From assembly GCA_020536535.1 (NCBI GenBank), contig JAHLWZ010000264.1, positions 1 to 58,745 on the forward strand: a DNA stretch of 58,745 bases. The letters run 5' to 3'. Shown in pieces: positions 1,770-58,206 of this stretch (the stretch's first letter is position 1; every line of letters starts with the position of its first letter). The DNA is from Pelomyxa schiedti. Taxonomy: Eukaryota; Protista; Evosea. The position numbers and the translations under genes were made by a program. Below the pieces are notes generated by a model, which worked only from the letters and a program-made list of their open reading frames with translations, did not search any database and had not been told where the DNA came from.

Positions 1770-1962
1770 CGGGCATGTCCCAGTATACATCGCACCACAA
1801 GTACTTGTAGGTTGGCGCGTCCAGCCAACCTGGCGCCACAACCATTTCCCACACAACTCGTGACACCCCCAGGATACCTTCCACGTCAAGATATTTCTCC
1901 ACGCTTCGTTGTTGTTGTGGTGTTGTTGTCGGTGTGCAACAATTGCTCAGTGACGATGCCAT
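1770..1962 (-). CDS. 5' fragment of a lineage-specific family protein (VSRVVW motif, as in the ankyrin-like paralogs), cut by the gap
   Basis: MASSLSNCCTPTTTPQQQRSVEKYLDVEGILGVSRVVWEMVVAPGW resembles the VSHVVWxHVV motif of the genes at 12689-19646. Confidence 0.4.
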
Positions 1963-2122
1963 CGACAGAGAAGCGAAAGTGATGACTGTACAACTTCTGG
2001 GAATTCGCTGACACGGGATGCTGTGGGATGCTGTGGACTCGGAATTCATCAGCTCATCATCGATGCAAGTTCGACTCCAAGCAAACCCATTAATTTTTTT
2101 TTTTCTGAGCTACTCCATCTTT

Positions 2123-5100
2123 TCAACCAAATTGTGTGATCCTGACGGTGTTGTAGTCGTAAATGTTTACAGCTGGATACAACCCACTTGGGATGTTGTT
2201 CACTGTTACAGTTGCGTTGCTGTGCAGCGGCCACCTCGCAGTCAGTGTGAGTGCGCTTGGGTCATACATCAGTGTAACTTCCTCTGTCCCACCGGTGGCC
2301 GTGAATGCAGGCGTGTTCTGAGGCAGGTTGTATGAACCGGCACCTGTGGACCAGCCACAAATGTTAGGGAAGGAGCCATTTTGGTCAAACGGCTTGGCAA
2401 TGAGTCCATAGTAGCAGTGGAAATCCCTCAGGTTGGAGATACTGAGGTGCCACTGGTACACACGTGTGTCAGCAGAATCCTGGAGCTGTGTGGTTGTCGT
2501 CACTGTTGATTGTTTGTATCCTCGGCAGCTTGCTGCTGGCTTGTAAACTGTTGAGTTGGAAGCTGTGATTCCAAGGAGGTTCCCACAGCACCCTGGGTCC
2601 CACTCCCATGTACCTTTTGATTTATCGTTTGTGTTTTGGAGATAACAGAGACAGTAGAACACACCAAAAGTGATAGAAGATGTTGCTTGCTGAGTACCAA
2701 CTTTCATAATCAGTGTTCCTTGATGGGTGCTGCTGGCCGACAACGGAAGTGGTGGAACTGTGCATGTGACCTCTGTGTCTGGGTGAGTCACTGAAATGCA
2801 GCTACACTGCACACCTGCTGTATCTTAATTTGAAGAAGAAGGGGTGTGTTTCCCACACCATTGACAGTAACAGTGATTCCGATTTCTGACATGCCAAATC
2901 CACGTCCTGTGATTGTCACCTTCCCCCCAAATTGGAGAGCCTTTGACACACTCTCGATCACTAGGGCTTCAGGAAAGCAAAGGTGAGTTTGGAGGAGAGA
3001 AAAGAGGAACAAACCTTGGTTGGCACGTAACATGTGCCGAACCCTCCGGGAGGATGCAGCAGGTGAAGGAGGTGTACCAGCGCTTCCGCCTGTTCCTAAT
3101 CTTGAGGGTGACACTGGTAGTGTCTCTTGGTGCCCAAACTGTACCACTGTTCAATGTAAGAAAAGATACAGGAGAAAGCTTCAGAAAACCTGGGAAAGAG
3201 AACCTTGTGTCATTTGGCCTGTCAGCTGGTGTCCCAAACACACTGAGTGACACTGGTAGGTTTTGCCCCACACCCTGTGGTACTTCGAATGTGAGAACAG
3301 AGCCTGGAGTGGCAACGTTCACATTTGTGCACTGTAGTTCACCAACCCGGACTTGAATGTCGTTGTTGGTTGCTGTCTTGGGCCAGAACCCAAACATTCT
3401 CACACTTAATGGCCCTGATACTGCATTTTTTTGCTCCTTGATGGATGCAAGCACTGGCACTGCGTGTGTGTGATTGGTTTGAAGGTTCAAAGGATGAGGA
3501 ACGCACACCAGCAGAAATGACACCCAGGCCTGGAATACTCTTCTGAAAGGTCTCAATGTCATCTGTGGAACTCACAGTCGCACTTACGTGATGTGACAAT
3601 GTGAGGTGTTCTGGTTTACATTCGAGTTGCTGTGAGAATTGAAAAGAATGACTGTTAAAAATTGGTTAAAAAGAACAAGGAAAAGACCTTGAGGATTGTA
3701 GGAATTGATTCAAACAGGTCAATTATTTTGGATGTCTCCCCACTCTTCAGGATTGACAAACACTTTGATTTGTACTTATCAATGTGCTGGAGTCCAGTGG
3801 AGAGAATTTCAAGGTGCTTTGATAATGCACAAACTGCGGTATTATTCATCAAAGAAGAGAAACATGGAGAGTAACACACCTTTGGAGGACGCAATTGTTT
3901 CAGAAGTCAAAAGTAGTTCATTTTGCCTTCTTTGCAAACTAGAGATCAGGTCAGAGAATTCCTTGCCAACAGTTTCCGCAAACTGGCTCTGCTCCTTTTT
4001 TTTGTCATTCGTTTGTAGAGAATGGGAACAAACAGACCAGCTTTATGTTGACAGTCTCAGACTTGATTAGTGTAGACAATGTATTTAACTCCGACTCCAG
4101 TCTTGACAGTTGTCCCAAAAACGCCATTGGGCTTGGGAGATTTTTGTAAGAAACCTCCTCCACTGAAGTGATAGAGTGCCCCTTTAAGAACATTCAGTTT
4201 GGCAGAAAAGCGCTCATGTGTCATATTTAGAACCTTGTGGGAGGAAAATAAGATACATCTCGAGCAGATTAAAGTGTTGTCGGTTTGGCAGAATACATCA
4301 AGTGGAAGTTGGTGAGTTTCACACATCTTGGTGCCTATTGTTTCTTTTTGTTTTGAACAAAAACAAGGAGAATAAATACCTTTTTGTGGGGCCTCAATAG
4401 GACCCACAGTGTGAACAGAAAGATCAAGTTTGGCATGGGACTTCCAGGACGCACTCCAGTGAGCCTTTGTCCAACACGAGTCACAATACAACATGTGTTC
4501 ACCACCCCCCAAAGCCTTTGTGCACTCCTCGCACATGTACTTTGCAGTGACATCAGCAATCCCAGCTTCCTTGCACATCACACACAACTCAACAACCACA
4601 GGAGGAATGAGCAGAGCGGTACAAGTAGTATCAGCAGCAGTGACAGTAGTAGTAGTAGCAGCATCAGCAGCAACAACAACATCAGTAGCACCAGAAGCAG
4701 CAGCAGCAGTATCCTTCCTCCTCCTCTTTGGATCAGATGGTGTTGCTTCACTCCCCTCCGCCGATTCATCTTTCACCTCACAGCGCGTCGCTGTTTGTTT
4801 CTCCCCTGTACTACTCGTCGTGGTGTGCAGTTGCAGCTGCAAATTTGCCACTCGTTTGCACTTGCAGACTGAGCACCAGAATTCAACGTCAGAAGGGGAT
4901 GACGTCGACGTCGACGACGACGAGAACAAGAACGAGAACACGGAGGAACGTGGTGGCGGCGGGGGCGTCGGCTTGGCCGTCGGACACGCGGGGGTCGGTA
5001 TGTCCCGCGAGAAAGTGACGATGGTGTCGCTGCACAGGCGGCACAAAGGGTGGCCGCACGACGGCGCGAGGCAGATCGCAGGCGACGGCGACGGCGGCAT

Positions 5101-5238
5101 CGGGAGGGGGGAGCCGCCGCCGCTCTCGAAGAGGCCTCGGCAAACCGAACAACGCAGCGGGGCCGGGCCTGTGATCGGAATTATGGGACAGTTGGCTACG
5201 GGCGTAGGTAGCAATGTGTTGGCTGTTTCCCCTGCCAT
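2123..5238 (-). CDS. TRIM/RBCC-like E3 ligase: RING-HC, B-box1, B-box2, coiled coil, two IPT/TIG domains, SPRY/B30.2-like C-terminus (multi-exon)
   Basis: Spliced in frame with GT-AG introns. RING: CSVC...CGHPLCRLC...CSVC. B-box1: CVMC...CEEC...CDSCWTKAH...SH. B-box2: CETHQLPLDVFCQTDNTLICSRCILFSSHK|GH. Helical heptad exons follow. IPT: VIESVSKALQFGGKVTITGRGFG...VTVN|GVQC...EVTCTVP. C-terminus: WEWDPGCCG...VYQWHLSI...YYGLI...LYPAVNIY, TGA at 2123. ATG 5238 is inferred. Confidence 0.85.
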
Positions 5239-5393
5239 CTGGGAGAAAAAAATGGGATGGTTTTGATGAAAATAGGAAGGTGTTCCACTAAAGCCCATGG
5301 AGGAATCACCAGGTGATTGAGTCGGTGAGGGGTTTCGCCACAGATTTAGCACAATTGGTGCGCGCTAAAACATTCAAACTCGAACGTTCATTG

Positions 5394-7850
5394 TTACATG
5401 ACGAAGTACAAGAGGAAGGAGGAGGCCAACAGGAGGATGGCAACAGAAAAGTGGGAGCGCATAGATTTCGCGGAGGAGAGTGACTCCACATAGTTGGAGG
5501 ATGAATGGGTGCTGGTGACTACGAGGCTGGAGTCATCCGGTATTGAGTGTGATTGTGATGGTGGTTGTGATTGTGATTGTGACCACGACGGTGGTGGTGG
5601 TGATGCTGACATGGAACCTGGCAGTAATGACACTGACACTGGCATTGAAACTGGGAACGAGGTTGCCTCTGATGATGGTGGCAATGACTGCAGTGAGGAT
5701 GAGGATGATGATGAGGGTGTGATTTGCCTGGCGCACTCTGATGGACTTCTGGTGTTGTTGCATCCACACATCACGCAGCCATTGAACGTGAAACAGTTTT
5801 GCTCCAGTTGACTGTAAAATGAAAACCGGATGAGTTTTTGTAAAAAAAAAAGGGAGAATAAAACCAGTGCACGAATTTCCCTTCTGAAAGGACCAATGGG
5901 AGAGTGCCATTCAAGAAGTTATAGCTCAGGTCACTGTAACCCGTTAGTCATTCATTTGGAATTAGGGCATACAAAATCACAGTTGTGGAATTATAGTTTT
6001 CAATGGAACCGCCGAGTAGATTGTGACTCATATTTCTATGTCGGTAAGGCTTGTAAAAAAGAAAAAAAGCGCACATGGAATTAAGTCTGGGGAGAGAAAC
6101 CCAGAAAGCTTGTGGGATAGTGCCGGAAATCATATTTGAAGACAAGTCCCTGTGTGCGTTGAGACAGAATGAGGGAGAAAAGGCAATAACGATACAGTGT
6201 GAGAAGCTTAGATAGAGCTTTGGTAGAAATCGGCAGAGTTCCAGAGAAGCGATTATTTTGCAACAATCTTTATTCATTGACATTAGCTATTATTATAAAT
6301 AAATATGGCTCGTACTTACAAGTTCTTCACTCTTGTTGCAAACAGAGTTGCTGGTAGGTCTCCAGAGAGTTGATTGGAGGAAAGTTGTCTATATTTATGG
6401 GTTTGAACCTACCACTATTTGAAAGAAAAGGACATAGAACCGAAGCTTGTTGAAAGAGAGCAGGTTGGTAAAGTACCAGATAAAAAATTCTCATCCAACT
6501 GTCTGTTTATCCGGAGTGAGCCTCATAGTATAAAAAGAAAAGAAGAGGATACATCCAGGAAAGTCTGTTTAGTGAACACAATAATTCTGGTGGGATGCTT
6601 CCTGTGAACTGATTTCGTGACAACATCCTTTGTTGTTTTTTTTTTTTTTTGTCATTTTACAAAAAGTAAAATAACAGAATAGGAGGGAATATTTACAGGT
6701 AATTCAAACTAGACATTGAAAAGATTGAACTTGGAATAGATCCACTGAATTGGTTCCCAGTGAGGTCCCTGTGAGTGAGGTTAGATTCCTTTGTTCGCCA
6801 AAAGAGAGAATGATTGGACTACAAGTGCAGGAGACAGGTTAAATTCGACGAAATATCCAAAGTTCCAGAAGTAAAACTATTATCTGCTAGGTTTAGAACC
6901 TGAAAAATAAAAAGATTTTTAAGAAGAAAGAGTTGAAGCCTCAGAAGTGAGGAGATGATGAGCACCTGAAGGGGCTGAGGAAGAGGAGGTACCGTTCCAC
7001 TGAAATGATTCACGTTGAGATTTCTGATGTCACATTAAAATGAGGGAATATACATTAACTAACAAGTCCATACAACTGAAGCAGCGAACGGAACTCTGAA
7101 AACCAAAGCGGCAGTGTTCCTGTCAGCAAATTCGAACCGAGATCTCTTTTTGGGATGGTGAGTGTACTGCGTTAAAAGGGAACAAAGGAAGGAAACATGG
7201 ACATCAGAGATGTCAGATTCTGAAGACAGGAAATTTCTCCAGTTAAGTTGTTGCGCCAAAACGACCTGTTGAAAAAAGTCAAAGGAATGGAATGCTCTGG
7301 AAGTTGGGAGGGTTATACAGTTTTCTTAATAGAAGCAATCGCGATAGTGTGTCTGGTATTACTCCATTAATATCATCCTGGGATAAGTCCCTGACAAGTT
7401 GGTGTGAGCCAAAGCAAAACAATGTCTCACATTTACAGATTCCTCAGTTGGGAAAAGTTTCCAATTGTTTGTGGTATTGTTCCCTGCTTGGTGGTGCGGC
7501 CACCCAAGGATCTTTTTTCGAATACATTAAAATGCACAGGGAAAAAAAAGTGGTGGAGTATCCAAGTACATTGAACATATGTGACCATCGAAACAGATCA
7601 ATCTGAAAAACGCAGTTTCATTGCAGGGAGGCTCCTCAGTGTATTCCTCGCATGGGTCATTCCAAAACTCCGGCTTCAATTCGTTGTACAGATCGCACAC
7701 GGCCTGGGCCTCAGCCCTCAACAATTCCCTCTCCGCCTCACTCACACTACTACTTGACTGCGGCAATGTTGATGTTGATGTTGATGTTGATGTTGATGTT
7801 GATGTTGATGTTGATGTTGATGTTGATGGTGGTGATGGTGACGATCCCAC
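5394..7850 (-). CDS. Extracellular LRR protein (plant/PGIP-type, ~14 repeats) with Cys caps, S/P-rich stalk and C-terminal GPI-like signal; 5' end unresolved
   Basis: Exons such as DLSQDDINGVIPDTLSRLLLLRKL, DLTGNQFSGSIPSSIFSMSSLNYL and DLSSNMISGTIPQAFWVSLPRLNS. C-cap CQLEQNCF...CGC. Ends SAKSMRSHFSVAILLLASSFLLYFVM*. Confidence 0.88.
7766..7830. repeat. (TGATGT)n hexamer repeat, read as (ST)n at the LRR gene 5' end
   Basis: Seen directly, about 10 units. Confidence 0.9.
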
Positions 7851-11300: not shown

Positions 11301-11400
11301 NNNNNNNNNNNNNNNNNNNNNNNNNNNNNNNNNNNNNNNNNNNNNNNNNNNNNNNNNNNNNNNNNNNNNNNNNNNNNNNNNNNNNNNNNNNNNNNNNNNN
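11301..11400. other. Assembly gap (100 N)
   Basis: Run of N. Confidence 1.
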
Positions 11401-58106: not shown

Positions 58107-58206
58107 NNNNNNNNNNNNNNNNNNNNNNNNNNNNNNNNNNNNNNNNNNNNNNNNNNNNNNNNNNNNNNNNNNNNNNNNNNNNNNNNNNNNNNNNNNNNNN
58201 NNNNNN
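58107..58206. other. Assembly gap (100 N)
   Basis: Run of N. Confidence 1.

Follow-up and report, generated by a model that had tools for sequence, protein, structure and literature searches.

Does the minus strand at positions 2123-5238 of a Pelomyxa schiedti contig encode one protein of the tripartite motif (TRIM) type, or only a row of unrelated open reading frames (ORFs)? The question arises in a stretch of 58,745 nt, hereafter the window (GenBank assembly GCA_020536535.1, contig JAHLWZ010000264.1, positions 1 to 58,745), where minus-strand ORF pieces at 4057-5352, 2969-3562, 2788-3147 and 2123-2812 lie in differing frames. An initial annotation had read them as a single gene for a TRIM-like ligase in a phagotrophic or endosymbiont-bearing amoeba, and P. 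schiedti is indeed both. The analysis described here makes it likely that the locus is a real P. schiedti gene for an 878-aa TRIM-like protein, in which a divergent C3HC4 RING-like motif, two B-boxes (B1 and B2) and a TRIM-type coiled coil, together the RBCC unit, are followed by a TIG-TIG-SPRY head. The protein belongs to a lineage-expanded family of ~20 members and would presumably act as a substrate-specific E3 ubiquitin ligase.

One spliced reading frame

Removal of ten GT-AG introns (43-58 nt) joins the ORF pieces into a single 2637-nt frame of 878 codons with zero internal stops, bearing out the claim that they splice in frame. The limits 2123-5238 had been placed exactly, and the C-terminus reads, as announced, ...GLYPAVNIY.... 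The introns have a G+C content of 0.24-0.49, against 0.51 in the coding sequence (CDS). The parts of the model are the following:

2123-5238, minus strand: whole CDS of the TRIM-like gene as built, 11 exons, 878 aa; ATG at 5238-5236, TGA at 2125-2123
4380-5238, minus strand: exon 1 (aa 1-286), with the conserved MAGET start, the RING-like motif, a low-complexity linker and B-box1
4335-4379, minus strand: intron 1, 45 nt, GT-AG, G+C 0.24, predicted
4233-4182, minus strand: intron 2, 52 nt, inside B-box2, predicted
4037-3995 and 3879-3834, minus strand: introns of 43 and 46 nt within the coiled-coil region (exons 3-5), predicted
3630-3687, minus strand: intron 5, 58 nt, GT-AG, between exon 5 (coiled-coil end) and exon 6, predicted; gapless paralogue alignment at the junction
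3509-3629, minus strand: exon 6 (aa 456-495), linker from coiled coil to TIG1, with ...TDDIE.FK.KIP... conserved in all paralogues; contains the coding stretch 3587-3543
3460-3508, minus strand: intron 6, 49 nt, GT-AG, required by the frame; gapless paralogue alignment at the junction
3147-3189, minus strand: intron 7, 43 nt, GT-AG, predicted
3015-3146, minus strand: exon 8, a 44-aa Pro/Ser-rich linker; RNA-covered at 3015-3052, with splicing to 2966
2967-3014, minus strand: intron 8, 48 nt, RNA-confirmed, joint 2966/3015
2858-2815, minus strand: intron 9, 44 nt, RNA-confirmed, splitting TIG2
2614-2664, minus strand: intron 10, 51 nt, RNA-confirmed, joint 2611/2663 (cut offset by 2)

Direct evidence for splicing comes from sequence runs, four from one study: two are RNA libraries of single cells that bear the label protist metagenome, and two, from "organism A", contain nearly all of the window. 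Their contigs were compared with the locus over 1900-5600. The junctions 3015|2966, 2859|2814 and 2665|2613 appear in contigs of RNA run X1, which skip 3014-2967, 2858-2815 and 2664-2614; read on the minus strand, each skipped segment begins with GT and ends with AG. RNA contigs span 2110-3052. Where the initial annotation had looked to RNA for every junction, the last three introns are seen in this way, and the other seven remain predictions because RNA coverage ends at 3052. These seven are backed by frame continuity, by low intron G+C and by gap-free colinearity with paralogues at every junction. Intron 2 is supported because the final two B-box2 ligands sit on the next exon, and intron 7 is required because the frame must hold given the RNA-proven junction 3015|2966. 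The model is colinear from end to end with the annotated paralogues P0018 and P0017 (814 aa each), with the second half of P0001 and with P0020; since full-length annotated paralogues align throughout, the one-gene reading goes beyond splice-site choice alone. The locus is a real, transcribed P. schiedti gene with a single reading frame that is partly RNA-confirmed.

The interval 3053-5525 is without RNA contigs and exons 1-7 are uncovered, and this counts against the model. It is also one opening for the view that the frame is an artefact of splice choice, made from two genes (one for the RBCC unit and one for the TIG-SPRY part) or from a non-functional pseudogene copy. Frames are easily made to fit at this locus: intron 1 is itself in frame and stop-free, so that its retention would likewise preserve the reading frame, and the 45 nt at 3587-3543, bounded by GT..AG, can be kept or excised in frame. 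Yet at least four independently annotated paralogues have the same order, RING through SPRY, in a single protein, gapless at the junctions, and P. schiedti genes were predicted with Augustus, PASA and EVM together with transcript data (PMC8887013). Decay does occur in the family, as a segmental duplicate of the gene on contig L002 has lost most of TIG2; in the window gene, by contrast, 878 codons are stop-free and RNA shows splicing and expression of the 3' third. Between the two copies, the ratio of nonsynonymous to synonymous substitution rates (dN/dS) is 0.45 at a dS of 0.29, and 0.38 for the SPRY domain alone, which points to moderate constraint on the gene, without sign of an arms race. 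We regard a splice-choice artefact or a pseudogene copy as very improbable.

Several candidate features were discarded in building the one-gene model. A first model with 11 introns and 863 aa was dropped when the paralogue alignment showed 3587-3543 to be coding; this stretch is kept as exon because its translation matches a segment retained in all paralogues. An intron start at 3506 was rejected for the frame shift that it causes, the start being at 3508. With regard to the 5' end, the ORF that reaches 5352 has a further in-frame ATG at 5298-5296, 20 codons before the start adopted here; this ATG is not conserved, as L002 has an intervening stop and the paralogues share a MAG[VE]T start, common to P0010, to internal positions of P0016 and P0017 and to the paralogous locus on L002. 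The sequence just 5' of the ATG at 5238 resembles a 3' splice site, so that an intron in the 5' untranslated region is possible.

The tripartite unit and its RING-like motif

The N-terminal half of the protein carries the following elements:

4864-5151, minus strand: RING-like C3HC4 motif (residues 30-125), C30-x2-C-x27-C-G-H-x2-C-x2-C-x52-C-x2-C125, found by a regular-expression match, with long Pro/Ser-rich loops
4714-4731, minus strand: PKRRRK basic motif (aa 170-175), candidate nuclear localisation signal, from the alignment
4435-4584, minus strand: B-box1 (aa 219-268), C-x2-C-x13-C-x2-C-x12-C-x2-C-x4-H-x7-H
4176-4323, minus strand: B-box2 (aa 291-322), C-x2-H-x7-C-x7-C-x2-C-x5-H-x2-H, interrupted by intron 2
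3688-4169, minus strand: coiled-coil region (aa ~325-455), exons 3-5, with weak TRIM_CC Pfam matches

B-box1 matches the Pfam family ANCHR-like_BBOX (18.7 bits, E=0.002), and B-box2 passes the zf-B_box cut-off of 24.1 bits with a score of 35.0 (E=1.6e-8). A profile of the family, built from 13 sequences, was searched against PDB sequences, and its 26 best matches are all TRIMs, ranked before any other protein. TRIM28 is matched at 1e-13 over B1, B2 and the coiled coil, the B-box-coiled coil of TRIM3, TRIM72 and TRIM5 at 5e-12 to 3e-11 (TRIM5 2.8e-11), and the tandem B-boxes of MID1 at 2.7e-5; in the alignments with TRIM28, TRIM5, TRIM72 and TRIM3 structures (E 1e-13 to 1e-10) the coiled coil runs ~130-170 positions past B-box2. 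This profile search is the strongest evidence that the B-box/coiled-coil unit is homologous to its animal TRIM counterpart. The initial annotation had claimed a complete tripartite unit: both B-boxes and the coiled coil stand, while its "complete RING-HC" comes down to an invariant Cys/His pattern.

This pattern is likely to be a RING, with support at the level of the motif. Six paralogues share all eight ligands without change, the L002 duplicate (~73% nucleotide identity there) has them intact, and the CGHxxCxxC core and the TF.RDIP segment that follows it are also invariant or nearly so. A number of results weigh against this assignment. In this copy, no RING hidden Markov model gives a significant match (best Pfam E=1.3); the family RING profile has no significant RING match in PDB; an hhalign comparison with the RING of one true TRIM-NHL protein gives a probability of 1.6%; and an AlphaFold2 (AF2) model of the 111-aa region, from six sequences, has a predicted local distance difference test score (pLDDT) of 53, with no fold match for this low-confidence model in Foldseek. 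In addition, 52 aa separate ligands 6 and 7, a loop length slightly outside the usual range, and the residue after the last Cys is K here and G or A in several paralogues. That residue is the "linchpin" position of RING E3s.

The same results could be explained if the TRIM scaffold had been kept while the N-terminal Cys/His motif had become a zinc module that is degenerate or has no catalytic role; in that case the protein would serve as an adaptor or assembly scaffold like RING-less TRIM relatives. The variable linchpin position and the very long low-complexity loops within the motif would fit such a protein, but the loops are only ~23% identical across the family, against the near-invariance of the ligands, the core and the TF.RDIP segment, which argues for a maintained zinc-binding fold. 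The absence of significant model, profile or fold support applies to this copy; among paralogue RING segments, RING-type families dominate the weak Pfam matches, and zf-RING_UBOX is found in 4/6 of them (best E 1.8e-5). Several annotated paralogues begin at B-box1 or B-box2 and are RING-less, though some may be truncated gene models, and the motif, where present, occupies the usual TRIM RING position. A non-catalytic scaffold is on balance unlikely, and a divergent RING is the reading retained here.

Within the otherwise variable linker between the RING and B-box1, PKRRRK is kept in the clade of the window gene and looks like a classical nuclear import signal. The same linker includes a GCT/ACT-rich low-complexity stretch (4632-4726) encoding an Ala/Thr run, which was treated as a repeat in read mapping. 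It is missing from one DNA contig of run X3, where repeat-length variation or assembly collapse may be responsible.

The TIG-TIG-SPRY head and known TRIM architectures

Behind the coiled coil, three further domains complete the protein:

3190-3459, minus strand: TIG1 (exon 7, aa 496-585), divergent IPT/TIG-like domain
2665-2966, minus strand: TIG2 (aa 630-715), exons 9 and 10, divided by the RNA-confirmed intron 9
2126-2613, minus strand: SPRY-fold domain (exon 11, aa 716-878), from AF2 and Foldseek

The initial annotation had recognised two IPT/TIG folds here, of which TIG2 is the clear one. Its halves score 20.0 and 16.4 bits against Pfam TIG, at profile positions 2-38 and 41-82; TIG2 of paralogues reaches 31-58 bits, and a TIG2 profile retrieves the Sec5 IPT domain from PDB at 3.7e-5, plexin IPT being matched as well. 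TIG1 is a probable IPT/TIG domain. Its Pfam TIG (PF01833) score of 20.4 bits lies 0.5 bit short of the cut-off of 20.9, a point against the assignment, and its single match in PDB is the MET IPT region (E=0.16); TIG is the sole recurrent Pfam match among the family's TIG1 segments (9/12), and 9/13 family members have Pfam TIG matches. Identity is spread fairly evenly over the domains of the family (0.45-0.63), TIG1 being the most conserved, with a mean pairwise identity of 0.63. The Pro/Ser-rich linker of exon 8 is found by alignment in the window gene and its segmental duplicate, and is missing from all other paralogues.

The assignment of the C-terminal domain to SPRY comes from structure prediction. 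The 162-aa C-terminal exon matches no Pfam family at E<=10, neither SPRY (PF00622) nor PRY (PF13765), these two models find no match in any scanned paralogue, and phmmer with the exon against PDB sequences returns nothing. The AF2 model of these 162 aa, from a 15-sequence family alignment, has a pLDDT of 90.4 and a predicted template modelling (TM) score of 0.86, and gives 322 PDB matches in Foldseek at E<=1e-3, the top 50 all being SPRY/B30.2. RanBP9/10 are at the head of the list (TM up to 0.76, E down to 1.9e-8), followed by the B30.2 domains of TRIM7, TRIM15, TRIM16 and MID1/2. Structure searches of AlphaFold DB and the ESM Atlas likewise give SPRY, as do language-model features. The C-terminal exon is thus confidently predicted to adopt a SPRY beta-sandwich, as had been proposed. 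The full order of RING-like motif, B1, B2, coiled coil, TIG, TIG and SPRY, which is that of the initial annotation, is present in the model and in at least four annotated paralogues.

How does this layout compare with TRIMs already described? The closest are the class C-I TRIMs (MID1/MID2 and TRIM9/67, RBCC-COS-FN3-PRY/SPRY), with which the order of a RING-like motif, B1, B2 and coiled coil, then an Ig-like beta-sandwich and a C-terminal SPRY, is shared. The Pelomyxa protein differs from them in having two IPT/TIG domains (PF01833) where class C-I has FN3, in lacking a PRY match, in a SPRY that is unseen by the Pfam SPRY model and structurally nearest to the RanBP9/10 type, and in the very long loops of its RING; its host is an archamoeba, whereas class C-I is animal. 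Neither COS nor fn3 has a Pfam match in the window exons or scanned paralogues. TRIM45 and TRIM2/3/71 (RBCC-filamin with or without NHL) likewise place an E-set Ig-like domain directly after the coiled coil. TRIM3 is among the best profile matches, and the nearest neighbours by language model include B-box clusters that carry filamin. These proteins carry a filamin repeat rather than TIG and end in NHL or nothing rather than in SPRY, and filamin has no Pfam match in the Pelomyxa family.

TRIM37-like proteins (Subfamily A, including DdTRIM of Dictyostelium) are defined by a C-terminal MATH domain, in contrast to the TIG-TIG-SPRY of the Pelomyxa family, in which no scanned member has a Pfam MATH match. 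Outside animals, Amoebozoa included, only this TRIM37-like subfamily was found by Marin in 2012 (PMC3503706), and the one TRIM37-like gene of Dictyostelium, DdTRIM, is the only TRIM discussed for Amoebozoa (PMC5758549). As to the SPRY domain, the best structural matches (TM up to 0.76, E ~2e-8) include RanBP9, RanBP10 and Gid1 of the CTLH E3 complex, ASH2L, SPSB and SSH4; with only 15-20% sequence identity to the Pelomyxa domain and an entirely different domain context (LisH/CTLH, SOCS box and others), the likeness is at fold level only.

Protist clusters of the ESM Atlas, 422-447 aa long, have SPRY in 56-75% and zf-B_box in 19-27% of their members and match the SPRY model at TM 0.79-0.80. Their sparse labels are Heterolobosea and Chytridiomycota, TIG is unlisted in them, and they are much shorter than the Pelomyxa protein. 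The combination of B-box and SPRY outside animals may accordingly be wider than P. schiedti. When a full-length paralogue is compared by language model, its closest neighbours are without exception animal TRIM-type clusters, at scores below 0.9 that give a lead only. None of the large ESM Atlas clusters joins B-box or SPRY with TIG, and the papers searched on TRIMs with TIG and on TRIMs in Amoebozoa or Holozoa do not describe this architecture, in agreement with the earlier remark that no TRIM with IPT/TIG domains was known. What is new is the TIG-TIG-SPRY head on an RBCC unit; GenBank already lists the proteins themselves, with TRIM names assigned automatically.

A Pelomyxa family and its possible role

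The family comprises ~20 members in P. schiedti, in tandem arrays and one segmental duplicate, and GenBank has automatically named some of them tripartite motif-containing protein 38 or 41, or TRIM50. An exhaustive phmmer search with the SPRY exon over 1.84 billion representatives gave 15 matches, of which the ten looked up are all P. schiedti GenBank proteins; one further weak match is a repeat protein. Word-index searches with two full-length members and the family profile (8000 candidates scored) added more P. schiedti proteins, their sole non-Pelomyxa match being a distant TRIM-NHL protein (E=2.3e-4), and no relative came out of two metagenome scans and one viral scan. In the data searched the family appears restricted to P. 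schiedti, although these blanks are weak evidence, given a SPRY too divergent for sequence search and 8000 index candidates. The GenBank protein of this exact locus was not found.

Three members stand in a row on an 11.6-kb contig, two on another, and two are fused in the GenBank model P0001. A tree of the region from B-box2 to TIG1 has two main clades and places the window gene with P0018, P0019, P0020, P0021 and the later half of P0001. Window positions 7754-2121 have a colinear counterpart on contig L002, at 71-85% nucleotide identity, which duplicates both the TRIM-like gene and the leucine-rich repeat (LRR) gene upstream of it. There, L002:6529-6608 (~79 nt) stands for window 2686-2979 (~293 nt), most of TIG2 being lost or degraded, and tblastn for the two TIG2 exons in this copy finds neither; the copy may be decaying, or may be a one-TIG variant. 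Against this duplicate, dS is 0.05-0.24 in the middle exons, B-box2 through TIG1 (3190-4334), and 0.42 in the first (4381-5238) and last (2126-2613) exons. Gene conversion between the two copies may account for the lower values. Positive selection in the short B-box2 and coiled-coil exons, where dN/dS exceeds 1, was rejected in view of the very low dS and the few sites.

The LRR gene, on the same strand (window 5394-7754, minus), is of the plant type and has a stalk rich in Ser and Pro and a hydrophobic segment at its C-terminus; its stop at 5396-5394 lies ~155 nt before the ATG of the TRIM-like gene. It was not found beside other family members on the two tandem-array contigs looked at. On L002, the GenBank model KAH3731649.1 (P0002; L002:1638-7183), which bears the name "LRR-GTPase of the ROCO family", runs the LRR gene and the TRIM-like paralogue together and takes the RING region in the wrong frame; the correct frame has a stop after the LRR gene, an intact MAGET... 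start and all RING ligands.

The published P. schiedti genome is a 52.4-Mb single-cell, RNA-scaffolded assembly with 7.4 introns per gene, 98% of them GT-AG (PMC8887013), and the 100-N gaps and short introns of the window agree with it. Such gaps lie at 1670-1769, 11301-11400 and 58107-58206, the first ~350 nt downstream of the stop codon. TRIM proteins are mentioned neither in that genome paper nor in a 2023 symbiont paper.

In TRIMs, an antiparallel coiled-coil dimer combines RING-bound E2 with a target-binding head. By analogy, the coiled coil of the Pelomyxa protein would form an antiparallel dimer, its RING would recruit a ubiquitin-charged E2 and its TIG-TIG-SPRY head, projecting from the coiled coil, would bind the target, the outcome being a substrate-specific E3 ubiquitin ligase. 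Ligase activity and a sensor or immune role are both inferred from such likeness. The "cytosolic sensor ligase" of the initial annotation was speculation and sits badly with the conserved, nuclear-import-like PKRRRK, a motif that suggests that part of the family may act in the nucleus. A role in defence or endosymbiont control is conjecture. In its fullest form, which we hold to be decidedly unlikely, an archamoeba with permanent prokaryotic endosymbionts would have independently built and expanded a TRIM-type family, with a head unknown in animals, for the cell-autonomous recognition of foreign or symbiont-derived structures, or of viruses and other invaders of the nucleus. If true, this would represent TRIM-like innate-immune diversification outside Metazoa.

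The TRIM-like family of P. schiedti bears on whether the layout of RBCC plus SPRY predates animals or arose more than once. It also bears on the modularity of a head made of an Ig-like spacer plus SPRY, with TIG located where animal TRIMs place FN3 or filamin. Finally, its ~20 natural variants constitute a tractable set for the study of TRIM-like function in a phagotroph with obligate endosymbionts.

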